Source: Selaginella moellendorffii (Eukaryota; Plantae; Lycopodiophyta). Taken from it: a stretch of 64,000 nt of DNA. Position numbers and translations under genes: made by a program. The notes under the pieces were generated by a model. It saw only the letters and a program-made list of their open reading frames with translations. It was not told the origin of the DNA and did no database searches. Below, piece by piece: positions 16,160 through 40,067 of this stretch; positions within the stretch are counted from its first letter, which is position 1, and each line of letters starts with the position of its first letter. Where the stretch lies: positions 3,916,451 through 3,980,450 of the forward strand of contig NW_003314263.1 of the NCBI RefSeq assembly GCF_000143415.4, read 5' to 3'.

Positions 16160-16259
16160 NNNNNNNNNNNNNNNNNNNNNNNNNNNNNNNNNNNNNNNNN
16201 NNNNNNNNNNNNNNNNNNNNNNNNNNNNNNNNNNNNNNNNNNNNNNNNNNNNNNNNNNN
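16160..16259. other. Assembly gap (100 N)
   Basis: Run of 100 Ns. Confidence 1.
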
Positions 16260-17099
16260 CTACAGGAAATAAATTTATAATATAAATGAAATAGAACTTG
16301 TTTTTGGTTTGAAATTAGGAAAAGTTGGGAGTATTTTTGCAAGGGGTGAAAATTAGCTTTTAGATATGCATATATATCTTGGAAATATTGAAGGGAAAGA
16401 TTACCAAGAATCATATTAAAAGCTAAACATATCAGATGAAGACAATTTAGATATGCATTTTTAATCACAATATTAAATCACAAGTAATGTTGGTATAAAT
16501 CTACCACACAGTATTTGGACATTGCCAATTATATGTCACACTCTCAAAAGTTGCTTTAGTTTTCACATTTTTAAACATATACATATATGTGTAAGAATTT
16601 GAAAACCAAATATTACTCAAAAAGGTACATGAGAAATTTAGTTTATAAGAAAATACTATAAAATGGTGAAATAAATGCTTTAATTAAAAAACAAATTTGT
16701 ATTTAGCTATGTATATAAATTATACAGATGGAATGGAAATAAAATAAATACCTAACTGACTATGTTGTTTTGCCCTTCCTGTAAACACTTGTCAAGTATA
16801 ACTTCATAGGCCTATTTACACTTTAGAAAAAATTTCTTGAGGAACAAGTAGTTTTAAAATATCAATTGTTAACATATCATGCCTATTCATTAAAGCCATG
16901 GACAAGGCATAGGCTTTATTTAAAATATAGCTATTTTTTAAAAGAAATATTTTTGATTTAGCTAATAGGAGAATATACTTGGATATCCTAGGATATTTTA
17001 CCATCTAACAGTGGTTATTCATTTATTTGAATCTTGTATTTATAATTTATGAACATGTTTATAATTTATAAACTTCTCTAACCACTTTATATCATCGTG

Positions 17100-17671
17100 A
17101 TATGGTTGTGAGGTCTTTTGAAGCATGAGCCAAAGAAATACCATAACTTACAATGCATTGATTAGGGCCTACATCCAGAATGGCAATTGTGAGGGAGCTC
17201 TTAAAGTTTCTAGGCTCATGGATCAAACTGGTGTCAAAATCAATGATCTCAGCTATTGGCAATGATTGATGTTTGTGCAGGTATGGAGAATTTACTGCAA
17301 GTCAAGTCTCTTCTCTCCTTGATCTTGGGAGATGCCAAGTAAGAACACTGGGAATAAGTTTAGAAATGTATTTATTTCCATGTATGTCCAGTGTGGAGAC
17401 TTGAGTGCCTCCGTACTAGTGTTCTAGGATCAATGGATGGAACCATCATGATATCATGTCCTGGAACTCAATTCTTGCTTACTATACTCAAAATGGAAGA
17501 AGTGAAGAGTCTCTAGAGATGCTTTGGGAGATGAGGTTGGATGGATCTTATCAGTTGAACACCATCACCTTTAGCACTGTTTTGAGTGCTTGCAGCTGTG
17601 CTGGATTTGTGGATCATGCTCATGAATCCAATATGGAGATTTCAATATTGACTATCAAAATGAAGAACTAA
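17100..17671 (+). pseudogene. PPR gene fragment in the left arm (mirror copy ~21925-22460 on minus strand)
   Basis: NTITYNALIRAYIQNGNCEGALKV...SWNSILAYYTQNGRSEESLEMLWEM...TITFSTVLSACSCAGFVD, frameshifted. Confidence 0.8.
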
Positions 17672-18519
17672 AACCACTTCAAACAATAATGAAGAAAGAA
17701 TGATACATACAAATATTAAAATATAATACATGTTATAAGAAACTAATAGATCATATAAATAATATATACAAACAGATTATATATCATAATAAAAAATACT
17801 TAAAAACAAAAGCAAACCAAGCGTAGCAATTTATATTTTCATGAAAGCAAACCAAGAACAAACAATGGAAAAAAATGTTTCTAAACTCCAGGACGTCAAA
17901 GAAGTGGCGGCCAAAAGCCGAGAAAGACCACAGTCATCCAGACGGAGAGAAATGCCATGTAAGCATGCCACATCATTGCCAGCTTCACGGTGGTAGATGC
18001 TCGTTACAGCACAGCGACTTGTCGATCGCGCAAATGGTCTCACAAGATCCAAGCTCAACGTTCGTCCCGAGCTTCCCTGGGAGATGGAGATGGCTGACAT
18101 ATTTGTGGAAGGGACTGCTCAGGCAGTGTCCTACCAACGGAGAGCACTCGTTCGAGCCCATGGATGATTGTGAAACACGTAAATACTTAGGAGGCGAGCG
18201 AGCGCCCTCTGAGAGGATGAGCGACTTCTCGCAGGAGGAAGGGCTGCGCAAGATTCATGATAGGCCAGACTACAAGTTGGTTGTTCTCCATCTCCGCCAC
18301 TTCTATTGACCAGCCAAATATGCTTCTCCTTGTTCCTCCAGGCTTTGCACAGCAATTCAGTCTCTATGAACCAGGGGCACTCTTTCGCTCACCATCTTTT
18401 TCTGGGCACAAAGGAAAAACTTTCTTGGCAATACCATGTTTGGGAATTTTCAGAGCTTCGCCAGCAGTTCTGATGCCCCTGGAGAGGCGGAATTTCTTCT
18501 TCTTTAGAACAAAACCGGT

Positions 18520-18900
18520 GGATTATCCGCTGCAATCGCTGCCGGCGGCAGGTCCACAAACTAGCCATCGCCAATCTGTACTAGAAAGATTGTGGAGCTC
18601 GTTAACTCTTTTTTCATTTTTTTTTATTAGATCCTCTCGATCTCTTCTCACGGTTGTGACATTTTTAAATTTGAGCTGCTGAAGCCAACGCGGGAGCGCT
18701 ACAACATCTCTATCTAGCGAATGTTTCTTTCCAGATGAGAGCTCAAGCAGCGGGTGCTTCACACAACATAGGAAGCCATTCCAAAACCGGCGGAATCAAA
18801 TCGGCTGCTCTGAATCGGAAAACAAGGATTCTGGATCATGCGATATTTCAAACGTTCTGGTTTTCGAACCGAGCGTCAAACACTGGTAGAGAGATTTTTG
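18520..18900 (+). pseudogene. Deleted copy of the ARM-repeat gene (39055-40067) in the left arm (mirror ~20960-21320)
   Basis: Mirror copy 21073-21210 (tatgttgtgtgaagcacc...gagctctcacctggaaagaaacgttcgctagatagagatgt|tgtagcgctccagcg...aatgtcacaactgtgagaa) matches 39495-39560 and 39685-39765, intron sequence included. Confidence 0.85.
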
Positions 18901-19032
18901 TGCATGTCTGCAAGTTTAAGTTTTAGAATTTTGTTGCGAAGCAAACAAACGTTTTGGGGAGTCAGTCGTTGACAAGATGCCGAGCCTACCCAGCTTTAGG
19001 GGTCCGTGGCTTTGGTCAGTTGAGGGCTTTCA

Positions 19033-19710
19033 GCCGGACACGATAAAAAGGCCCTGAAAAATTGTGTTTTTACATGCTAAATGTACTGTCGAGGAACATA
19101 CCTTCTTACTACTAACGTAAGGTTCAGTCCTTAGGTTAGAGTGGGTTAAAAAAATGTAATCTTGATCTTGAGTTCCCGCCAAGGTGTCCAACTTTCGTGT
19201 AGCCGAGCCATTCACAAACACCAATACTTAATCTCTTGCATCCACCCAGCAGCACCCAGTGATCCCTCCAGGCCAAGTCCCACAGCTGGATCTCATGCTG
19301 TTGAGAGAGCTGCCGCTAGCATCCGCTGCCACAGCCAAATCCACGAGCAACACCACCATGAGCATCACCTCCTGCCCAACCGCCACTAGATCGCATGCTG
19401 CCGCCAGTGCTGCCGCCACGGCCAAATCCCATGCTGCCACCGACTGGTGCCACCCAAGGTCTAAACTCGAATTTTTATAATTTTTCAGAATTCCATTTGA
19501 TTGCTATCAAGGACAACATTTTAAAGTTTGTTTTTCCTCTCATGATTCTCCTACTTACAGTAGTTTGAGCTCTGGAACATGCCAGATGACTATACCACTC
19601 ACGACGGCCTAATTGCGGCCTTAGCGCAGTCTCCAGCGACTGGCATGGTTGCATTGGCGAGCCATGACAAGTGTGTCCATTGAAGTAGAGTGAGAAGAAG
19701 ACAACAGACT
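19033..19710 (+). pseudogene. Fragments of the LUG WD40 region in the left arm (3'-end part mirrored at ~20555-20750)
   Basis: gccggacacgataaaaagg matches 27458, acgtaaggttcagtcc matches 27603, cttgagttcccgccaa matches 27695 (intron), and 19565-19700 matches the last LUG exon and stop region (28408-28560). Confidence 0.9.
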
Positions 19711-20114
19711 TAAGCTAAGCAAATACCCATTGTTTTCTCTCTTTTTTTCATTCATAGGGCTTCCAGTGTTGAAACTACTACAAAATCACCTGTTATGGCT
19801 TTTGTTTTCCAACACACATCACATACCCAAAGAATATATACTTACTATGAATAACAAAGCCAGATTTTGCCAGGTTACAAGTGGATAGAGCTAATATGTA
19901 ATGTGATGGTTGTTTACAATTTATCAACGAAATCCAGGAAAGTAATCGAGAAAAAGATGAACAAAAACTTCTGGATGTTCGCTGGTGCAACAAAGAGAAG
20001 CTACTTTGAGTGTTCCAGACCCTCTAATTGTAACCATGCCCCACCCGATATTCATACGTTAGCTTTGGCTGCTCGTGCTTGTAGCATGAGCATTGAATAG
20101 AAGCCATAGAGATG

Positions 20115-22783
20115 TGGCAATGCAGATTGCTGGGCTCACCAACAAGGGGAACTTGAAGTCTGGCCTATCATAAATCTTGCACAGCGTTATCTTAGAGAAC
20201 CATTCCCCGCCTCTCACGCACCGGTTCCCATCATCCATGGATGGAAACCAAAGACCTTGGAATATTCTTAGTGTTAAGAATCTTGATTTCAGCTGATAAA
20301 TTGTAACAACCAGCGAGTGGGTAGTGTTTTCTCTTACACATTAAGATAATCCTTACATATTAGCTCTGCCCTCCATCTATCCACTTGTAACCTGGCAAAA
20401 TCTGGCTTTGTTATGATCTTTTAAGTTAAGGAAGTCTATATGCGAGTATTTTCTTTGGGTATGTGATGTGTGTTGGAAAACAAAAGCCATAACAGATGAT
20501 TTTGTAGTACTTTCAACACTGGAAGTCCTATGAATGAAACAACAAAAAGAAAACAACTTCTCTCACTCTACTTCAATTGACACACTTGTCATGGCTCGCC
20601 AATGCAACCATGCCAGTCGCTGGAGACTGCGCCAAGGCCGCAATTAGGCCGTCGTGAGTGGTATAGTCATATGGCATGTTCCACAGCTCAAACTGTAGCA
20701 GAATCATGAGAGGAAACACAAACGTTAAAATGTTGTCCTTACTAGCAATCACAGTGGAATAAAATTTTATGAAATCTTTTTACAAGTCGCGTAAGGAGTG
20801 GAAGAGGGATTAGCAGGGCGTGGCAGCATGAGATCTAGTGGTGGCGCTTGGGTAGGCTCGGCATCTTGTCAACGACTGACTCCCCAAAACGTTTGTTTGC
20901 TTCAAACATTTGAGCGTGACTCGCAACCAAATTCTAAAACTTAAGCTTGCACACCTGCAGTGTTTGACGCTCGGTTCGAAAACCGGAACGTTTGAAATAT
21001 CGCATGATCCAGAATCCTTGTTTCCCGATTCAGAGCAGCCGATTTGATTCCGCCGGTTTTGGAATGGCTTCCTATGTTGTGTGAAGCACCCGCTGCCTGA
21101 GCTCTCACCTGGAAAGAAACGTTCGCTAGATAGAGATGTTGTAGCGCTCCAGCGTTGGCTTCTTCCGTGGATGTCAGGAGCTCAAAGTTAAAAATGTCAC
21201 AACTGTGAGAAGAGATCGAGAGGATCTAATAAAAAAGAATGAAAAAAGAGTTAACGAGCTCCACAATCTTTCTAGTACAGATTAGCGATGGCTAGGCCGC
21301 CGGCAGCGATCGCAGCGGATAATCCACCGGTTTTTTTTCTAAAGAAGAAGAAATTCCGTCCCTCCAGGGGCATCAGAACTGCTGGCGAAGCTCTGAAAAT
21401 TCCCAAACATGGTATTCGACAAGTCGCTGTGCTGTAACGAGCATCTACCAGAACGTCGCATATGGGAGACGTAGGATCTATGGATCACTGCGATGGCGAG
21501 CTGTTTTTGCTCCAACCAGGCTGAGGCCTCGTCTCTCTCCACCTAGCTGGCAATGATGTGGCATGCTTACATGGCATTTCTCTCTTTCCACTCCAGTCTG
21601 CATCTGTCCGTCAGATGACTGTGGTCTTTCTCGGCTTTTGACCGGCACTTCTTTGACGTCCTGGGGTTTAGAGACATTTTTTTTCATTGTTTGTTCTTGG
21701 TTTGCTTTCATGAAAAAATAAATTGCCATGCTTGGCTTGCTTTTATTTTTAAGTGTTTTTTATTATGATATATAATTTGTTCATGGTGTTATTCCTACTT
21801 TTGTATATATTATTTATTTTATCCATATATGATTTATTAGTTTCTTATAACATTCTTTTATTATTTGTATGTATCTTTTTTTTCTCCATTATTGTTTAAA
21901 GTGGTTTTGGTTCTTCATTTTGATAGTCAATATTGAAATCTCCATGCTGGATTCACAAGCATGATCCATGAATCCAGCACAGCTGCAAGCACTCAAAAGA
22001 GTGCTAAAGGTGATGGTGTTCAGCTTATAAGATCCATCCAACCTCATCTCTCAAAACATCTCTAGAGACTCTTCACTTTTTCCATTCTGAATGTAGTAAG
22101 CAAGAATTGAGTTCTAGGATATGATATCATGATGGTTCCATCCACTGATCCTAGAACACTAATACAGAGGCACTCTCCACACTGGACATACATGGAAATT
22201 AATACATTTCCAAGCTTATTCCTAGTGTTCTTACTTGCTGGCATCTCCCAAGATCCAGGAGAGAAGAGACTTGGCTTGTAGTAAATGCTCCATACCTGCA
22301 CAAACATCAATCATTGCTAGTCATTGATTTTGACACCAATTTGATCCATAAGCCTAGAAACTTTAAGAGCTCCCTCACAATTGCCATTCTAGATGTAGGC
22401 CCTAAGCAATGCATTGTAAGTTATGGTATTTCTTTGGCTCATGCTTCAAAAGACCCCATGACTAGATCACAATGATACAAAGTGGTTAGAAAAGTTTATA
22501 AATTATAAACATGTTCATAAATTATAAATACAAAATTTATCTAAATGAATAACCACTGTTAAATGGTAAAATATCCTAGAATATCTAAACATATTCTCTT
22601 ATAACCTGGCAATGCAGATTCCTGGGCTCACCAAGAAGGGGAACTTGAAGTCTGGCCTATCATAAATCCTGCACGGCATTATCTTAGAGAACCATTCCAT
22701 GCCTCTCATGCACCAGTAGGTTCCCATCATCCATGGATGCCTGCTGAGTCCTAAACCAAAGACCTTGGAATATTCTTAGTGTT
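20115..22783 (+). repeat. Direct repeats of ~160-175 bp (20115-20275 and 22607-22783) bracketing the right arm
   Basis: tggcaatgcagatt(g/c)ctgggctcaccaa...gaacttgaagtctggcctatcataaatc...aaaccaaagaccttggaatattcttagtgtt occurs at both sites. Confidence 0.9.
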
Positions 22784-23678
22784 TAGATTCAGCTTTGCAC
22801 TATCCCGTTTTGCATGGAGCATGCAAGAATGCAATTTCCAGTTGGTTAAATTCCAGAAAGTAAAATCGTATCTGCAGAAAATATATGTCTAAGCTCCATA
22901 AATTAGAGCATAAGTACGAGAATCTAGTATGTGTAAGCTGAATTCATGGATCCAAGTCGCTTAGAACACAAGTGGAGAAGTGGAGTATGTTTGTTTCTTT
23001 TTACATCTTTTGCAACCTTAAGATCATATTAGCAAAGAGTTTTCACTGCCAGCGATATGGAAGAAGTGGAGCTACGATGTCACGATGATCAAGAGAACCA
23101 TATAGTAGAGCACAGAGCAAATAATAGATTGGACACTCACAGGAGTAGCTTACGTTCCTAACTAATTACATATTGGGTCTCCTTTTTAAATCCTTAGTGA
23201 TGATCAGGAGATTGGAAAAGATGCTTTTTTCCACAAATTATACTAATTTGAGTTAAGAGTGCTTAAGATTTTAACCCCGTAAAATATTCTAGGAGATGGC
23301 CGACATATTTGAGCGTGGCAGGAAGGGGTGAGCCCAGCAATCTGCGATTGCCAGGTGATTCTCAAACTCCGCAAGTACTATCCAACGAGCAGCCAAACCT
23401 TACATATAAATATCGGGTGGAGCATGGTTACAATTAGAGGGTCTGGACACTCAAAGCAGTGTCTCTTCCAGCCGATAGGAGCATTCTTTCGTAGAAATCT
23501 TCGTGCTCACCATCTTTTTCTGAACGCGCAAAGAATTAAAGAACCACTTTCTTGTGCCACACTCTGCACCTAAAGAGATCCTTTTTTTTAATTTGGCAGA
23601 GCTCGATAATTCCAGCGAGCTCCGGCGAAAGAAGCCTAGCTTGAGCATTCCCAGCGCTTGTTTGAGCGAACGAATTGA

Positions 23679-23900
23679 TCAATTGCTAGGGAAACATAGA
23701 ACGAGCTCCACATTCTGTCTCTCATAGCACAGATTGAGAATCACATCCGCTGCGGTCGCTGCTGGCAACGTTACCTTGGCGGCGGCGATTCTGGTAAGCA
23801 AACCTTTCTTCTCTAATGTCTCAGTAGTGACATTAGCTGACATCCGCACGGAAGAAGCCAACGCTGCGGGAGCGCGACAGAGCATCTGTTTCCACCCGAC
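23679..23900 (-). pseudogene. Second degenerate copy of the ARM-repeat gene
   Basis: Encodes VILNLCYERQNVELVL, identical to the ARM gene. An adjacent plus-strand piece EEANAAGARQSICFHP matches another ARM exon, so the copy is locally scrambled. Confidence 0.8.
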
Positions 23901-24633
23901 CAGATCTCTTGAGTAGAACTTTCAAGGTTCCTCCTTTAAAACTCTACCTAAGCGTCCCATGTGAGAGCCCCAGCAGCGGGTTCCACAACTTATGCTCCGC
24001 GAAAGCCATTTCTTAAGATCATTTCTTAAGAGTTGGATCATACTCGAAATCTCTCTGAGATGTTTTGAAAACGTCTGGAGAGAATGAATTGTTACGCGCT
24101 AAAGCTGATAAGAACAGGGCGCAAGCATTTATGTAGGAATGACTCTGATCGTTGACATTGCATCAGCTGATGGTTTTGTTCTCGCGCTTGAAGCTCAAAT
24201 TTTTTACGTTTTGGCGCGGTCAACGAGAGTCTGACTGGCAAGACTGCCGAGCCTACCCAGCTTTGGCAAGATATCCCCAAATGGCCTTGCCGGACCTCCC
24301 CGGTGTGGTAGGTCCGTGACCGAGCCTGCGTGCCTTGCAGAAAGAAGCACACACTTAAACACTCTATAGCTCGAACACTCCTTGTTTTGCAAGCTCGTGG
24401 CTATGGCGGATCCATGGACGCGAGCGCTATCGAGCAGGGGCGCCTAAAGATCTCGGTTCCAAGGTCAGTGCTCTTCCTGCCCCCTGCATTCTCTCTCGGC
24501 AGAGGTGATTGCGCAGCTCAGGGTTTTGTGCGAGTCCTAGGAGGATTTTCGCGTGCCACTGCAATGACGAGGGCTTTCATCTGCAGGATAGGCGGATTCT
24601 ATTGCCGGAGTCCTTCGAAAGAGGGGAGGCGCA

Positions 24634-27600
24634 ATGGCGCAAAGTAACTGGGAAGCCGATAAGATGTAAGCGTTTGGATTTCTTTTTGTCCTTCTCGTTG
24701 TTTGAGTAAGATTGGGATTGGCAGGCTCGATGTTTATATACACGACTATCTTGTGAAGAAAAACCTCCAGGCCTCTGCCAAGGCCTTTCAGACAGAGGGC
24801 AAAGTTTCTGGCGATCCTGTCGGTAAGAGCTCCTCTCCGTAGAGATTCTTGTCCTCATAGGAGTTCCATTGCTCCTTTTTTTCCCTTTTTTTTTCGATGC
24901 AGCGATTGATGCTCCTGGTGGTTTTTTGTTCGAGTGGTGGTCCGTGTTCTGGGACATTTTCATTGCTCGTACGAATGAAAAGCACTCAGAGGTGGCTGCT
25001 TCATATATCGAGGTAAGCTTTTCCTCTTCCTATTCATTTTTCTTATTCATCACCCCTTGTGCTACAGACTCAGCAACTCAAGGCGAGAGAACAACAGCAG
25101 CAACACCAGCATCTTCAGCACCAGCAGCAACAGCAGCAAATTCAGCAGCAGCAGCACCAGCAGCAGCACCAACAACAATTACAACAAAGTCAGCAGCAGC
25201 AGCAACAGCAGCAGCAGTTGCAGCAAAGTCAGCAGCAGCAGCAGCAGCAACAACAACAGCTGCAGCAAAACCAGCAGCAACACCAGCAACAGCAGCAGCA
25301 CCAGCAGCAGCAGCAACACCAGCAGCAACTTCACATGCAGCAGATTCAACTCCTCCAGCGTCAAGCCCAGCAGCAGCAGCAACCTCGGAGGGATCTGGCC
25401 ATAAACGCTGCTGCAAACGGCATGGGTGGTGATTCACTCCCCCCAACTGCGAATGCAATGGCAACCAAAATCTACGAGGAGCGTCTCAAGCATCCACACC
25501 AACGTGACACTCTCGAAGATATTAAGGTCTGTTCAGTTGCCGTGACCCAAGGGACGCATTCTGACTGGGGGTCTTTGCAGAGATACGGAGAGCCTCCGGG
25601 ACAGCTTTTGGATCCAAGCCCGACAAGTCTGCTTAAAGGAGCGCCGACTCCTGGCCAGCCGTCTGGGTAAATGATCTTTTTTCTTTGATGTCATTACGTT
25701 TTCAAACTCTGGAAATGGACAGGCCTTTACTTCCAGCTAGTGCTGCTGGATTGCAACAAGTTCAGAACAGGCCTCAGCTCTCTGGAGTCTCTCAGGTACG
25801 TGTTCTGGTCTTCTAGTCTCTGTCCGGCTCATTCGTTTTTTACACAAAACAGGACAGCAAGAGCGACGGCAACGTAGTTTTGAATCAAAGATCACCTGCA
25901 CCGGATCCTTCCATGTTTGGGCATGCCAAGCCAAACCTTCTTAGTCCAGGTATGCTCTTGACTTTAAGAGTGCGCTTGAGTTGACGTTTTAACTATCGGC
26001 AGGAGTCAATCAAGGAGGAAATGCAATGTCATTGAAAGGCTGGTCATTAGCTGTAAGTGCAATCGACACGGAAGTATTTGTTGTTTGACGTTGGTGTCTT
26101 GCGCTGCTCAGGGAATGGATCAGCTTCGCCCGACGCTAGTGCAAAATCAGAAGCCGTCTTTGCAGGCTTCTCAAGCATATCATATACTGAGTCCTCAGCA
26201 CCAGCACTTACTGCTTCAGGCTCAGGCGCAAGGAAGCTTGCCTTCGTCCAATTCCGCTCTCCTTGGTGACGTAGACGGGAGAAGGTTTCGCATGCTTCTC
26301 AGTCGGAATCAAAACCAAATGGGCAAAGATGGTCAAGCTGGTCTCAGCGAGGTCGGATCACCTATGCAGGCTGCAACACTCCTGCCTCGTGGTAATCCAC
26401 AGGATCAGGGGGAGATGCTGATGAAGGTACTATCTTCATTTTTCACTCATGGAGCTTGAAGTGTTTCTTTTCATTTTTTGGCAGATGAAAATGGCCCAGT
26501 CGCAGCAAGCTCAAAGTGGCCAACAGCCACAGCCACCACAGTCTTCTCAACAAGGGCAGCAAGCGCAGCAGCAACCGGCAACGCCACAACAGCAGCAGCA
26601 GCAGCAGCAACAACTACAACAAGAGAGAATGGGTGTTGTTGGAGTTGATGGTGCGCTGTCCAACTCCTTTAGGGGAACCGGCGACCAGGTTTATAGCGGC
26701 ATGGAGCCGAGTCCCAGTACGAATAGCACAGGGACTGGAAAGGTGAAAGTGAGATATAATTTGTAGCGTCAACGTTCTTACGTTTCTTCGTTTTATTTCC
26801 TTTTCGTCTACAGGTTGCTGCTAAAGGTCCCAGTGGCCGAAAACGGAAGCAACCGGCGTCATCCTCTGGTCCAGCTAATAGTACGGGTACAGCGAACACG
26901 GCGGGTCCGAATTCCCCATCGTCTCCATCAACACATACGCCTGGCGATGTCATTTCCATGGCGGGAGCTTTACAACAAAATGGAAACATCTCCAAGTCGC
27001 TTATGATGTACGGGTCAGATGGAGCTGGGACGCTTGCTTCGCCTACAAACCAGCTGGTAAGAACTATATGCTGTAAGCTGCAATAGGATGGTTTTTTCCT
27101 GATTTTCTCTGTAATGGCTTTTTTGTCAAGGGTCTGAGTGGTGGAAATTGAAGTTGCAGGCTGATATTGACCGCTTCGGCGAAGATCCGTCGCTGGATGA
27201 TAACGTCGAGTCCTTTTTATCGCACGACGACGCAGATCATCGCGATGGCTTGTTTGGAAGCAGCAAACAGAGCCCTGCCATGGATGTGAGCAAAGGCACA
27301 TATCTATTTCGATAAATGCATTTCGATAGAATTTCTCCTCTTACTGTTGGTTTGAATTCATTGACCAGGTTTTCTTAGCGAAGTAGGTTGCTTGCGAGCA
27401 AGTACGAGCAAGGTTGTCTGTTGCCATTTCTCGTCCGACGGGAAACTTCTTGCAAGCGCCGGACACGATAAAAAGGTCTGGAAAAAAATGTGTTTTTAAG
27501 TCAATGCCGTATGCTAATTGTTCTCTTGGCAGGCTGTTCTCTGGAATATGGACACTCTAAAGCTCAAGAGTACCCTCGAGGAGCACACCTTTCTTATTAC

Positions 27601-28547
27601 TGACGTAAGGTTCAGTCCAAACTCCACGCGCCTGGCGACCTCGTCATTTGATAAGACCGTGAGAGTGTGGGATGCAGACAATGTAAGTCTTGAGCTTGAG
27701 TTCCCGCCAACCGAATCATGCGGACTAATTCTTGTCCAACTCTCGTGTAGCCGAGCTATTCCTTGAGAACGTTCACCGGCCATCAGACGTCGGTTATGTC
27801 GCTTGACTTCCATCCCGTGAACGAGGACCTGCTGTGTTCTTGCGACGGAGATAGCGAGATACGCTACTGGAGTGTGAGCCAAGGCGTTTGCACCAGAGTC
27901 TTCAAGGTTTGTCTGTCTCTTTGCGAAGCACGGTGCTGATGCGTGATAAGTTGCAGGGTGGTATGGCGCAGACGAGGTTCCAGCCAAGAGTCGGAAGGTT
28001 ATTGGCGGCAGCTGCCGAGAATGTGGTCTCTATTTTTGATGTGGATACCGAGACTTGTGTACATTCCTTACAGGTAGGCACGTCTTCTGTGGTAATCTTT
28101 GCTCAAATCTTTTTCTTTTCTGGCAGCGACACACGAAGCCGGTACACTCGGTGTGCTGGGACGCTACTGGCGACTACGTCGCTTCGGTCAGTGAAGATTC
28201 GGTTCGAGTATGGGCACTAAATGGAAGCGATGGCGATTGCATCCACGAGCTGAACTGCAACGGGAACAAGTTCCACTCTTGTGTGTTCCACCCCAAGTTA
28301 CCGACTTTGCTGGTCATCGGTTGCTATCAAGTACGGCAGTTTAAAGTTTATTTTTTTCCTCGTTTTGTGTGTGTCTTGATGTTCATGGTTCTTCTACTTG
28401 CAGTCGCTTGAGCTCTGGAACATGCAAGAGAACAAGACCATGACTATACCCGCTCATGACGGCCTGATCGCGGCCTTGGCACAATCTCCAGCGACTGGCA
28501 TGGTTGCGTCGGCGAGCCATGACAAGTGTGTCAGGCTGTGGAAGTAG
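24634..28547 (+). CDS. LUG: Transcriptional corepressor LEUNIG/LUH (LisH-LUFS, Q-rich, WD40)
   Basis: [11 protein letters not shown]|[36 protein letters not shown], polyQ, and WD40 repeats ending [13 protein letters not shown]. Confidence 0.96.
25089..25383 (+). repeat. CAG/CAA polyglutamine tract in LUG
   Basis: About 100 codons dominated by CAG/CAA, interrupted by His/Leu/Ser. A second short tract lies at 26587-26622. Confidence 0.95.
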
Positions 28548-28762
28548 AATGAGAGAGCCAGAGACAACATGAATAGCTACAGGGATTCACAAGAATCTCA
28601 AAGCTGTTTATAGAGAAGCACAGATTTGTGACAACAGGTATGAATTCCACAGATTTATATTTCCTATTTCACGGTGGTGTCAGTTGTTTACACGACAACG
28701 AGAAAAGCAAACCAGTTTACAGGAGAAGGCGGGGGCGAGTTTTCGGCTCCTGCTTGCTGCTC

Positions 28763-35051: not shown

Positions 35052-36650
35052 TTATTTAAAGCTCTCTCTAAAACAAGATGCTCCAAGGAAACACCTCCAT
35101 TCTAAAGCCTGGGGAATAAAAGGCATGTTGGTAATTAAATCTTTAGCCATGACAAGATGGCTAGATCGACCCAGCAAATCAATTGCACAACAGTAATGTT
35201 GGCTTGTGGGTTGAATGCCGAAGTCAAAACTCATAGACAGAAATCTAGCTCTCCCTTGAAACAATTTTCCAGCATGGCTAGAGGCAAGAAAAATTATGCT
35301 GAAGCATATTTCATCTGGCTCCTCAGTCAGGCATAAAGAACCAAAACTATACAAAACATTATCAAACTGTCCGGCTTGGGCATATGTTGCAAGAAGCGTG
35401 TTCCAAGAAACTACATCTTTATCTAGCATTTGATTAAAATAATTCTTACAGTGCTCAACTTGAAATATTCTGGAATAAACAAAAAGCATTACATTACAAG
35501 TGACAAGATCTCTTTCGGGACTTCCGTTGAACAAATGAAAGGCCTCCTCCCAGTAGCCATTCTGGGCATATCCAGAGAGCATACAATTAAAAGAAGAAAT
35601 GTTCCACTCTGGCATTGTGTCAAAAGTTTTTCTTGCTTGATCAATGTAGCCATTATGTGAGTAAGTGGAAAGCAATGTATTGAAGAGCAAAAGGCTCTTG
35701 TGTGGAGTTTGATCAAACACGAGCTTTGCCAGCTCCAGGTTTTGATGGATCGAGCACGCACTGATCATTGCAGCAGCGGAGGCTAAGTCATGCTGAGGTG
35801 ACGAATCAAACAACCGCTTCGATCGCCCAAGATCCTTCTCATGGCTGAGCATCATAGTGATCGAAACTAAGCTCTTTCCTGGCATTGACTCAAAAAATTC
35901 TCTAGTCCCCTCAGATCTCTCTCCCTGGACAAGAGCGGCCAGCATTGTATTGAGAGAAACAAGGCTATGGAACGGCATCTCACGGAAAATCTTGCAAACA
36001 AATTCTAGATATCCCTTTTGGGCATATGCAGTAAGAAGCGTGTTCCATGACACGACATCAACCTCAGGCATTGATTCGAACAATTCTTTTGCTTCTTCAA
36101 TGCGGCCGTAAGCGGCATGGGCGTTTAGGATTACATTCCACGTAACGAGCGTCCACTCTGGCATTGCAAAGAACATGTCCCTAGATAAGAACAAATGCCC
36201 CTTTTCGGCAAGTGCCTTTAGAACAGTTGTCATTGACACAAGATCTCTTTCTGGCATGTTTTGGAAGAAATCTCTAACTTGGCTCAAGCTACTGTTCTTG
36301 CAAAATGCAGCCAGAAGCGAGTTCCAAGATACCAGATCCCACTCGGGCATCTGGCGGAAGAAATCAAAGGCCTGATGGAACTCCCCGGCCTGGACATGGG
36401 CCGCTAGCATAGCGTTCCACGACACAATACTGCGCTGCGGCATCCTGAGAAATATGACCTTGGCGCTGCTGGAATTCCTGCTAGAGGCCATGGCGGAAAG
36501 AATGGTGTTCCAGGCAAGAAGATTGGGAGCGGGCATTTGCTCAAAGAGGAGCTGAGCGTCGCGAACTCGCCCATCGCGAGCGCGTGAGGAGATTTTTCGC
36601 ACCCAAGCAGAAGAATCGTCAATTGTCCCGGTCGAGCAAAAGCCTTCCAT
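35052..36650 (-). CDS. PLS-class PPR protein, SS-motif array with truncated E domain
   Basis: 31-aa repeats (MPEWDLVSWNSLL...), HYCCAIDLLGRSSHL...MPFIP; no DYW domain. Confidence 0.9.
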   Translation of the reverse strand: MEGFCSTGTIDDSSAWVRKISSRARDGRVRDAQLLFEQMPAPNLLAWNTILSAMASSRNSSSAKVIFLRMPQRSIVSWNAMLAAHVQAGEFHQAFDFFRQMPEWDLVSWNSLLAAFCKNSSLSQVRDFFQNMPERDLVSMTTVLKALAEKGHLFLSRDMFFAMPEWTLVTWNVILNAHAAYGRIEEAKELFESMPEVDVVSWNTLLTAYAQKGYLEFVCKIFREMPFHSLVSLNTMLAALVQGERSEGTREFFESMPGKSLVSITMMLSHEKDLGRSKRLFDSSPQHDLASAAAMISACSIHQNLELAKLVFDQTPHKSLLLFNTLLSTYSHNGYIDQARKTFDTMPEWNISSFNCMLSGYAQNGYWEEAFHLFNGSPERDLVTCNVMLFVYSRIFQVEHCKNYFNQMLDKDVVSWNTLLATYAQAGQFDNVLYSFGSLCLTEEPDEICFSIIFLASSHAGKLFQGRARFLSMSFDFGIQPTSQHYCCAIDLLGRSSHLVMAKDLITNMPFIPQALEWRCFLGASCFRESFK

Positions 36651-37129: not shown

Positions 37130-39030
37130 CCATTCCATCTGGCTAAAACCAAATATGTCCAACTTGAAATATTCTTGGACAACCAGCATGTAATGTCATC
37201 AATAGCTTCCTACAATTAAACTCTTGACAATGTTATCCTTGAATAAGTAGAAAGCAGGGCATTGAAGAGCAAAGGCCCTTGTGTGTCAAACACGCAGCTT
37301 CAAGTGGATAGAGCACTCACTGAACATTGCATGCTGAGGAGACTAATCAAACAACAAGCTTTGATTGCCCAAGATCATTTTCATGAGCGGGCATTACGAA
37401 ACATGCAGATATCCCTTTTTCTTATGCAGCGAGTTGCGTGTTCCATGACCTCTAGCATCAAAGTCAAACACTTGCTTTGCTTCTTCTACGGGACAGTAAG
37501 CCGTGCATTTAAGATTATGTTCCACGTAGTGAGCGTTCACTCTTCTCTGGCATTGTAAAGAACATCTCCCGAGATAAACCAAATGCCCTCTTTCGGCAAG
37601 TGCCTAAGAACAGTTACAAGATCCCTCTCTCGCATGTTTTGGAAGAACATTATAGGGTTCCACGATACCACATCCCACTGGTGGAAGAAATCATAGGCTT
37701 GATGGAATCCCCTGGCCTGAAAGACACAATACTGCACTGCGCCATCCTGAGAAATATGGCATTGCTGAAATTCCCGAGCAGGTGAACATGGTTTTTTTTG
37801 CAGAAAACCATAGTGTGGGTCATTTGGTCTCAATTTTACACTAGGTTAACAGTAGGTTGGTAAGGTATATTTTTCAACTAAAAAATATATCAATAAAGAA
37901 TAATTTACCTTCTATATAAAGTTATATAGAGAAAATATGTGAAAAAGGAAACACCAGATGAAAATCTTGTAGATCTCTGTTAGCTATACCAAATTATTGT
38001 TGAAGTTGTGATGAGGGTGGTGGAGTTAGCACTTAGCTATGGTATATTATAATCATGTAGTGCTCATTTTTTAACTCAATTAGAAAAATATTTGATGTTA
38101 AAATTCATAATATAAAACCACTTCCAGTCCATTTAGATTCATAATTTAAAACCACTTTGTAAGTACAGAAAACTATTCTAAACCATAAACACGAAACTCT
38201 ATCAAAATCATAAACATAATTTATTGTGTAGGTTTACTTGTATTTTAAACATTTTATATTATTATAATATATAATTTTAATAGAGATATTAATAGAATTT
38301 TTTTTTTGACATAGAGAATGTTTAATTTCTATTTCACACATTGCACACTTCTAGTTTATCAAATTCAAGCTTTTAATAGGGACTTGCTGTTATGATGAAG
38401 TTATTAACACCTCTCTTTCTATGAAAGATAATAGAATGTCTAATAAAATTCTTGATTACTTTTTATATTACTCTTTGAACTCTAATCATCACCAGCAATG
38501 ACCTATATTGGAGAATCTATAACTAAAGAAAAGAAAAAAGAATAAAGAGTTCTACACTCAACAGAATAATGTCCTCACTAAGAAATTAAGGGTATTTGAC
38601 TGGAAGATATTAAATGTCAATGCCCTCCAAAAAGAAAAAGAATTCTACTTTAGATAAACAATGATTGGCAATCTTTATCCGATGAAGAGAAGCTAATGAC
38701 AACATTCTATTGCTCAAACATAATCAACCATTGTTGTTTAAATTTTTTTTATAAATTATAAATATGCTTTTAATTTATAAATGCAAAATTATGAATGTGA
38801 TATTATAATCCATATTATTTACAATGGAAATTTTCATATAAACACCATCCAAAGTCCAACATTTAATCATGTGAACGATTATGAAAAACCATGTTTATTA
38901 GGCAAACAATGGTCACCGGCTCCCTGTGCTAGTGGCCATGGCGGAAAGAATAAGAAGCAGGCATTTGCTCAAAGAGGAGCTGAGCGTCTCGATATTGCGA
39001 GCGCGTAAGTCAATCAAAAGCCTTCCATGG
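37130..39030 (-). pseudogene. Degenerate tandem copy of PPR 35052-36650, split by a ~1 kb AT-rich insert (~37830-38890)
   Basis: 38927-39030 matches 36480-36650 (ggccatggcggaaagaat, gctcaaagaggagctgagcgtc, caaaagccttccatg). 37150-37780 matches 35450-36480 with many deletions. Confidence 0.85.
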
Positions 39031-39054: not shown

Positions 39055-40067
39055 TTATTGTTGCGAGAGGGAAGTAAAAAGAGTTCTAACCTCTTGAGTG
39101 AAAAAAATGTTATGAACGATGCTTGCCAGCATGATATTTCTCATTGCTCGCACAATGCTAGCCCGTTTCTTATAACAGGTATGTGAGTCTCTCCCCAGCA
39201 AGTTTAGCAGGGCTCCCGCGGCGCAAACCTGTGGAAAGATCTTTCTAGCAATTCTAGTTCGTGTTTCTCGCAAGTTACCTGTGTTTGAAGCTCGGAGCTG
39301 CCAAGCAAATGGACCAAGGAAAACATCGCGTCGCTGTTCCGGATCATCGTCCTGCTCGCAATCTCTCTCGAGATGTTTTGGAGAGCGCCGGCAGCTGACC
39401 CGCAAATGCCGAGTTGCCGGCTCTGGAGCAGCCGTATGAGTGATTTGATTCCACCCTTCTTGCGAATCTCGCGAATGGCTTCGCCGTCGGAGCTTATGTT
39501 GTGCAAAGCGCCAGTTGCTCGAGCTCTCACCTGAAAAGAAACTTTTGCTAGATAGAGATGTGAAGGAAGAACGTTGGAGAGTTTACTCACGCTCTGGGAT
39601 TTGGACGAGAGCAATTGGACAAGTATCGCGATTGCTCCCAGCGTTCGCACGATCTGGCGGCCTTTTGGGTGGAAGCAAATGCTCTGTAGCGCTCCAGCGG
39701 CGTTGGCCTGGAGCTCTTCTTCCGTGGATATGAGCAGCTCAATCTAATGTCACAACTGTGAGAAAGGACAAACAAAAAAGAAGAAAAGAGATTTTCTCAC
39801 CAGAATCGCGGCGCCATTGTTGTTTAGAACGAGCTCCACATTCTGCCTCTCATAGCACAGATTGAGTATAACATTCGCCCCCTCTGCTGCGATCGCCGCT
39901 GGCAAAGATCTGTCCCCCAAGCAATCGAGCAATTCGCCCATGTACTGCTGGCCCAGCACTACCCTCTGCCCCTTCTTTCTCGTCAGGACCTTCAACTGCA
40001 TCATAAAAGGGAGCAACTCTTGCGGCTCCACTGCCCCAAGATCGCCCAACGCCATGGCCCCAGCCAT
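39055..40067 (-). CDS. Small armadillo-repeat protein (~260 aa), spliced
   Basis: ANAAGALQSIC, RARATGALHNIS, GGIKSLIRLL, SAAGALQNIS, CAAGALLNL. Confidence 0.85.

Follow-up and report, generated by a model that had tools for sequence, protein, structure and literature searches.

The DNA considered here is a window of 64,000 nucleotides (nt) of the lycophyte Selaginella moellendorffii (contig NW_003314263.1, positions 3,916,451 to 3,980,450), in which a gene for a LEUNIG-family co-repressor lies next to a large segmented fold-back, an imperfect palindrome whose inner arms carry a decayed copy of the last coding exon of this gene. All coordinates are positions in the window, which are converted to those of GL377567.1 (assembly GCA_000143415.2) by adding 3916450. 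A first-pass annotation, made from the sequence alone, had described a near-perfect stem of about 90 base pairs (bp) containing 22- and 23-nt blocks identical to the last exon of the gene, and had proposed that small RNAs from the right arm would be perfectly antisense to its mRNA. It had also placed the start of the gene about 2 kb from the end of the fold-back, which agrees with a start codon near 24634 and a fold-back end at 22602, a distance of approximately 2.0 kb.

The assignment of the gene to the LEUNIG family is based on the architecture and the relatives of its product. The latter comprises an N-terminal LisH domain (Pfam, E=3.5e-09), a glutamine-rich middle part and WD40 repeats that are recognized by Pfam in four exons, and thereby displays the arrangement of LEUNIG and LEUNIG_HOMOLOG, namely an N-terminal LisH/LUFS region, a glutamine-rich middle and a C-terminal WD40 propeller. 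In searches with single exons, the N-terminus shares 92-95% identity with full-length relatives and the WD40 exons share 87-96% with a Diphasiastrum protein, while angiosperm relatives carry the name transcriptional corepressor LEUNIG. The LEUNIG-family protein of Selaginella itself was not among the matches listed, neither for one WD40 exon compared with protein representatives nor in word searches with a Mesotaenium relative and with a lycophyte/moss alignment plus exons of the window. Reading frames and GT-AG borders define the last coding exon as 28404-28547. The polyglutamine tracts of the protein are encoded by long imperfect CAG/CAA repeats at 25056-25397 and 26547-26621.

The innermost paired part of the fold-back is formed by 19562-19695 and 20561-20694, which are reverse complementary over 134 nt (register p+q=40256) with only four mismatched pairs, at 19572, 19585, 19623 and 19678, and for which a duplex energy of -264.7 kcal/mol is predicted. 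The stem of the first-pass annotation is part of this pairing, as 19585-19677 pairs with 20579-20671 with 2 mismatches, and the gene-identical blocks are likewise confirmed: 23 nt at 19630-19652 correspond exactly to 28485-28507 of the gene, and 22 nt at 19656-19677 correspond exactly to 28511-28532. The 3 nt that separate both blocks in the left arm include two transitions, and in the right arm the second block extends by one further base (20578-20600, antisense to 28511-28533). The surrounding inner region, 19490-20760, is predicted to fold into one long hairpin of -710 kcal/mol. Both the inverted repeat and its homology to the gene greatly exceed what chance would produce.

The inner left arm holds further pieces of the gene, which follow the gene's own order. 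The last of them, 19501-19706, matches 28321-28569; it starts in the terminal part of the penultimate exon, continues through the last intron and the last exon to about 20 nt past the stop codon, and is the only gene-body piece present in both arms. The identity of either arm to this part of the gene amounts to approximately 79-84% overall and to 89-90% over a core of 83-84 nt. The last intron has been retained in the copy (28331-28403 matches 19512-19560), as have pieces of earlier introns, and therefore genomic DNA rather than mRNA was the source; the absence of introns that marks a processed (retro-copied) pseudogene is not seen here. At the start of the copied exon, TCG has become the stop codon TAG, and 12 nt in its middle and 4 nt near its end are missing. 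Since all three defects are common to both arms, a single capture, followed by damage to the fragment, preceded the inverted duplication; the right arm additionally lacks the splice acceptor. The Kimura two-parameter (K2P) distances, 0.19-0.25 between copy and gene (0.26 in the intron) versus 0.04-0.08 between the arms, agree with this order of capture first and inversion second. A copy of the gene promoter in arm segment B was also considered and was rejected, as only approximately 40-60 nt resemble the upstream region of the gene.

Table 1. Positions of the fold-back, its component parts and the neighbouring LEUNIG-family gene.
Feature	Position	Strand	Details
Whole segmented fold-back (imperfect palindrome), 5.6 kb	16965-22602	.	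Self-BLAST and repeat finder
Arm pair	16965-17984 / 21545-22602		Self-comparison
Arm pair	17991-18025 / 21416-21450		Self-comparison
Arm pair (segment B)	18430-18992 / 20849-21416		Self-comparison
Arm pair (inner)	19490-19889 / 20376-20760		Self-comparison
PPR-repeat pseudogene fragments, left outer arm	17125-17671	+	Pfam PPR matches; partners on the - strand of the right arm at 21892-22310
Short piece corresponding to 24227-24264, upstream of the gene's start codon	18959-18997	+	20-nt perfect match; in both arms
Eroded gene pieces (27458-27498, 27570-27618, 27664-27761; WD40 exons and introns)	19033-19213	+	Left arm only and thus unpaired
Copy of penultimate-exon end and last intron (gene 28321-28403)	19501-19561	+	Splice donor mutated
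Left arm of inner stem; decayed last exon of the LEUNIG-family gene in sense orientation	19562-19695	+	TAG stop at 19561-19563; 12-nt and 4-nt deletions
23-nt and 22-nt gene-identical blocks, left arm	19630-19677	+	
Loop, 486 nt	19890-20375	.	Palindrome centre joins 22607-22790 (direct copy) to 23327-23467 (inverted copy)
Right arm of inner stem	20561-20694	+	Reads antisense to the gene's last exon on the + strand
Right-arm blocks 20578-20600 and 20604-20626	20578-20626	+	Perfectly antisense to 28511-28533 and 28485-28507; give six perfect 21-mers
LEUNIG-family co-repressor coding region; parent of the copied fragment, putative target	24634-28547	+	Annotated by NCBI as a 948-aa product that ends at 28547
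Putative target site in the last coding exon (28404-28547)	28485-28533	+	Holds the perfect matches

The stem belongs to a kilobase-scale pseudogene palindrome rather than to a discrete miRNA-like hairpin. Self-comparison resolves this palindrome into the arm pairs of Table 1, which are 92-96% identical (K2P 0.04-0.08) and differ by many insertions and deletions (indels) as well as by substitutions that are mainly transitions (86 vs 37), while the left-arm blocks 18026-18429 and 18993-19489 have no counterpart in the right arm. The ratio of observed to expected CpG is 0.13-0.22 in the outer arms and 0.37-0.50 in the inner arms, compared with 0.98 in the WD40 exons of the parent gene. Together with the transition bias, this depletion is typical of DNA that is old, dead and probably methylated. 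Segment B is exceptional, combining a CpG ratio near 1.0 with an arm-to-arm identity of 96%.

Several further features of the fold-back and its surroundings deserve mention. Just right of the fold-back, a 746-bp segment (22607-23352) is bordered by an inverted repeat of 26-27 nt (22607-22632 and 23327-23352), and within the loop, at 19993-20282, the inverted copy of 23327-23467 meets the direct copy of 22607-22790 exactly at this repeat, as though an allele with the 22607-23352 segment flipped had served as the template of the loop. Close to either end of the fold-back (17030-17081 and 22495-22537) lies an AT-rich near-palindromic motif (TTTATAATTTATRAACATG...), further copies of which are located at 38748-38790 and 164-276; it could represent a small repeat or the end of a transposon. 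Members of a short repeat family, whose pieces are partly rearranged between copies, are located at 39495-39905, 23697-23897, 21073-21273 and 18561-18770, that is, in the arms of the fold-back, in the upstream region of the LEUNIG-family gene and in the 3' flank of a gene for a 439-aa product. The GC-rich block 19213-19500 of the left arm, which is confined to this arm, contains internal repeats and reads as glycine-rich on the - strand; a source for it was not found within the window by BLAST or translated search. Putative DYW-domain PPR debris at 22602-22730(-) and 20062-20238(-) was dropped for want of a Pfam match. An intact PPR gene of 532 aa with nine PPR repeats is situated at 35052-36650 on the - strand and is not closely related to the PPR fragments of the fold-back; its public record spans 6.1 kb and does not translate to its product. 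Finally, a 100-N assembly gap in an AT-rich stretch (16160-16259) lies approximately 700 nt to the left of the fold-back.

The explanation that we favour, with a probability of roughly 55%, is an inverted segmental duplication of pseudogene debris, among it the last exon of the neighbouring gene as a dead copy, and thus a duplication scar. According to this scenario, the DNA beside the LEUNIG-family gene would at first have held pieces of PPR pseudogenes together with a partial genomic copy of the gene, which subsequently would have lost most of its length by deletions. A later inverted duplication of this stretch would have given rise to the 5.6-kb imperfect palindrome, with the dead copy of the last exon as its inner arms. 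The 22-23-nt identities to the gene would then be remnants of common descent, and long identical runs would be all the likelier because changes in the gene are restricted to synonymous sites. Should the locus be transcribed at all, the hairpin would be processed by Dicer-like enzymes, and small interfering RNAs (siRNAs), a few of them matching the gene, would arise as a by-product. The structure, the homology and the succession of events are shown by the sequence comparisons, and we infer that no function has been selected.

When mismatches are distributed randomly at the density that was observed, 2-7% of trials contain two runs as long as the identical blocks (at least 23 and at least 22 nt), and 12-16% contain a 48-nt window with no more than 2 mismatches. 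By this measure the blocks are only mildly unusual and, taken alone, do not constitute evidence of selection; descent from a duplicated exon accounts for them well enough. The proposal that siRNAs from the fold-back act against the LEUNIG-family mRNA is partly supported: its sequence logic, comprising the perfectly antisense 21-mers and the spacing of about 2 kb, is right, and it would depend on such RNAs being made.

On the other side of the balance, two points weigh against a mere scar. The 80-nt tract 3' of the 12-nt deletion, which corresponds to 28453-28532 and holds the identical blocks, departs from the gene at 8 sites, each by a transition, and 7 of these changes are synonymous and lie at third codon positions, whereas upstream of the deletion 5 of 7 differences within the same pseudo-exon affect first or second codon positions, one of them creating the stop codon. 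For 7 of 8 differences at third positions, p=0.0026 is obtained relative to an even spread, and p is approximately 0.02 by our calculation if the gene changes only at synonymous sites while the copy drifts freely; the contrast between both halves of the pseudo-exon yields p=0.04. The test is post hoc and comprises 8 sites, and the pattern is a weak hint of a tract kept complementary to the mRNA. In addition, the absence of function is an assumption of the scar explanation, and long near-perfect inverted repeats of plants, once transcribed, usually yield siRNAs (reviewed in PMC10827316). The codon-position pattern would equally be expected, however, if the copy had for most of its existence been part of a functional paralog. 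In its most far-reaching form, the alternative would be a lycophyte endogenous inverted repeat that is partway to becoming a MIRNA-like regulator of LEUNIG, in which selection holds the 80-nt tract complementary to the mRNA while the rest decays. Such selection would explain why nearly all differences between the tract and the gene are at synonymous sites, and this form of the alternative nonetheless appears unlikely.

A more general version of this idea, a working endogenous inverted repeat at a proto-MIRNA stage, is possible, though it remains tentative and falls well short of even odds. The locus would be transcribed through the inner arms, the stem of approximately 400 bp would be diced mainly to 21-nt siRNAs, and those derived from the exon tract would guide cleavage or repression of the LEUNIG-family mRNA at its last coding exon. 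The predicted long hairpin with its near-perfect, LEUNIG-derived stem of 134 bp speaks for this, as does the third-position bias, which is expected if the copy is held to match the mRNA. Moreover, a transcript of the + strand would contain six 21-mers perfectly antisense to the gene (starts 20578-20580 and 20604-20606) and 57 with at most 3 mismatches. A transcript of the - strand would contain five perfectly antisense 21-mers from the left arm and 124 with at most 3 mismatches, the latter count including pieces that are restricted to the left arm and would not be double-stranded. Orthologs of DCL1, DCL3 and DCL4 are reported for all land plants examined, S. moellendorffii included, while the small RNAs of S. 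moellendorffii show no obvious 24-nt peak and DCL2 was not found in this species (PMC5569507). Transcribed long inverted repeats of plants are diced into siRNAs without RNA-dependent RNA polymerase and are regarded as starting points of MIR genes (PMC10827316, citing Allen et al. 2004); the locus would follow this model, in which a MIR gene is born by inverted duplication of its target sequence. The proposed antisense mechanism is thus plausible in principle.

On the contrary, most of the palindrome consists of unrelated pseudogene debris, the scarcity of CpG in the arms points to DNA that is silent and methylated, and the identical blocks alone are not statistically compelling. The predicted small-RNA sequences were not found in the literature searched, nor are they among the S. 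moellendorffii miRNA candidates published by You et al. 2017 (PMC5569507), a list that contains candidates of conserved families only; both results are weak negative evidence. A literature search retrieved no relevant paper joining Selaginella, LEUNIG and miRNA. Rfam returned no match, either for the whole window at gathering scores or for 16500-23000 at E up to 1. Exact look-ups of 11 open reading frames (ORFs) of the fold-back gave no recorded product, and a similarity search with the ORF of the right-arm pseudo-exon retrieved nothing from Selaginella.

An effect of the fold-back in cis, in which the inverted repeat draws DNA methylation or alters chromatin looping and thereby tunes transcription of the LEUNIG-family gene without the exon tract serving as a guide in trans, is quite improbable. 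The position 2.0 kb upstream of the start codon and the CpG-depleted arms speak for it, and gene-proximal inverted repeats of Arabidopsis have been described that act via methylation and short-range chromatin loops (PMC10827316). However, the missing 24-nt peak among the small RNAs of S. moellendorffii (PMC5569507) disfavours such a mechanism, and the CpG ratio of segment B does not look like that of methylated DNA.

More doubtful still is a transposon with captured gene fragments, Pack-MULE-like or of another type with long terminal inverted repeats, whose terminal repeats would be the arms. Fragments of several genes are indeed enclosed in an inverted-repeat structure, and the AT-rich motif that lies close to either end has further copies in the window. 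Yet neither a target-site duplication nor defined termini are found at 16965 and 22602, where the flanks share no duplicated bases and the repeat fades out, and the structure is repeated over its whole length rather than at its ends alone. Within the window, only short pieces of the fold-back recur. Since the fragments derive from DNA in the adjacent 2-12 kb and the gene pieces among them keep the order of the gene, local duplication and inversion is indicated rather than capture by a transposon.

An assembly artefact, i.e. a false join of two co-assembled haplotypes, both of which the S. moellendorffii assembly presumably holds, can be suspected from the run of N to the left of the fold-back but is hardly credible, as the arms differ by 4-8%, many indels and two arm-specific blocks of 400-500 nt, which is too much for a simple assembly error, and as a unique 486-nt loop parts the arms while the gap lies outside the structure.

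Structurally, the fold-back belongs to the known kind of endogenous inverted repeats that originate when a gene fragment is duplicated in inverted orientation. Like the Arabidopsis siRNA loci IR71 and IR2039 (PMC10827316), it is a kilobase-scale palindrome, and a single RNA transcribed from it would form extended, nearly perfect double-stranded RNA that could be diced without RNA-dependent RNA polymerase; the long intramolecular inverted repeat that defines such loci is present. On the other hand, the Selaginella palindrome is more segmented, and transcription and siRNAs are documented for IR71 (PMC10827316) but hypothetical for the fold-back. Furthermore, DCL2, which is among the enzymes that process IR71, was not found in S. 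moellendorffii (PMC5569507), whose small RNAs lack a 24-nt peak.

Young MIRNA genes constitute a second point of reference. MIR161 derived from PPR genes, as did the outer arms of the fold-back. In both cases the homology of the arms to a protein-coding gene extends beyond a single 21-nt site, and the parent gene would be the target. In contrast to the discrete imperfect hairpin of approximately 70-300 nt with one dominant miRNA/miRNA* duplex that characterizes these genes, the fold-back has a stem of at least 134-400 bp within a 5.6-kb palindrome, a 486-nt loop and no Rfam family. A third resemblance exists to inverted pseudogene pairs as hairpin sources of siRNAs, where a dead inverted-duplicate copy with antisense potential likewise lies near a functional parent. 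Here, however, pairing is limited to the last exon and a portion of the intron before it, whereas the pieces at 19033-19213 occur in one arm only.

The meaning of the locus depends on which of the two leading explanations applies. An expressed hairpin with an effect on the LEUNIG-family mRNA would represent an early stage of the inverted-duplication route to small-RNA regulators outside seed plants. The target would then be a conserved developmental co-repressor, and the codon-position pattern would offer a way to find such selected loci from sequence only. If, instead, the fold-back is a duplication scar, it warns that perfect matches of 22-23 nt between a pseudo-exon and its parent gene are to be expected from descent alone.

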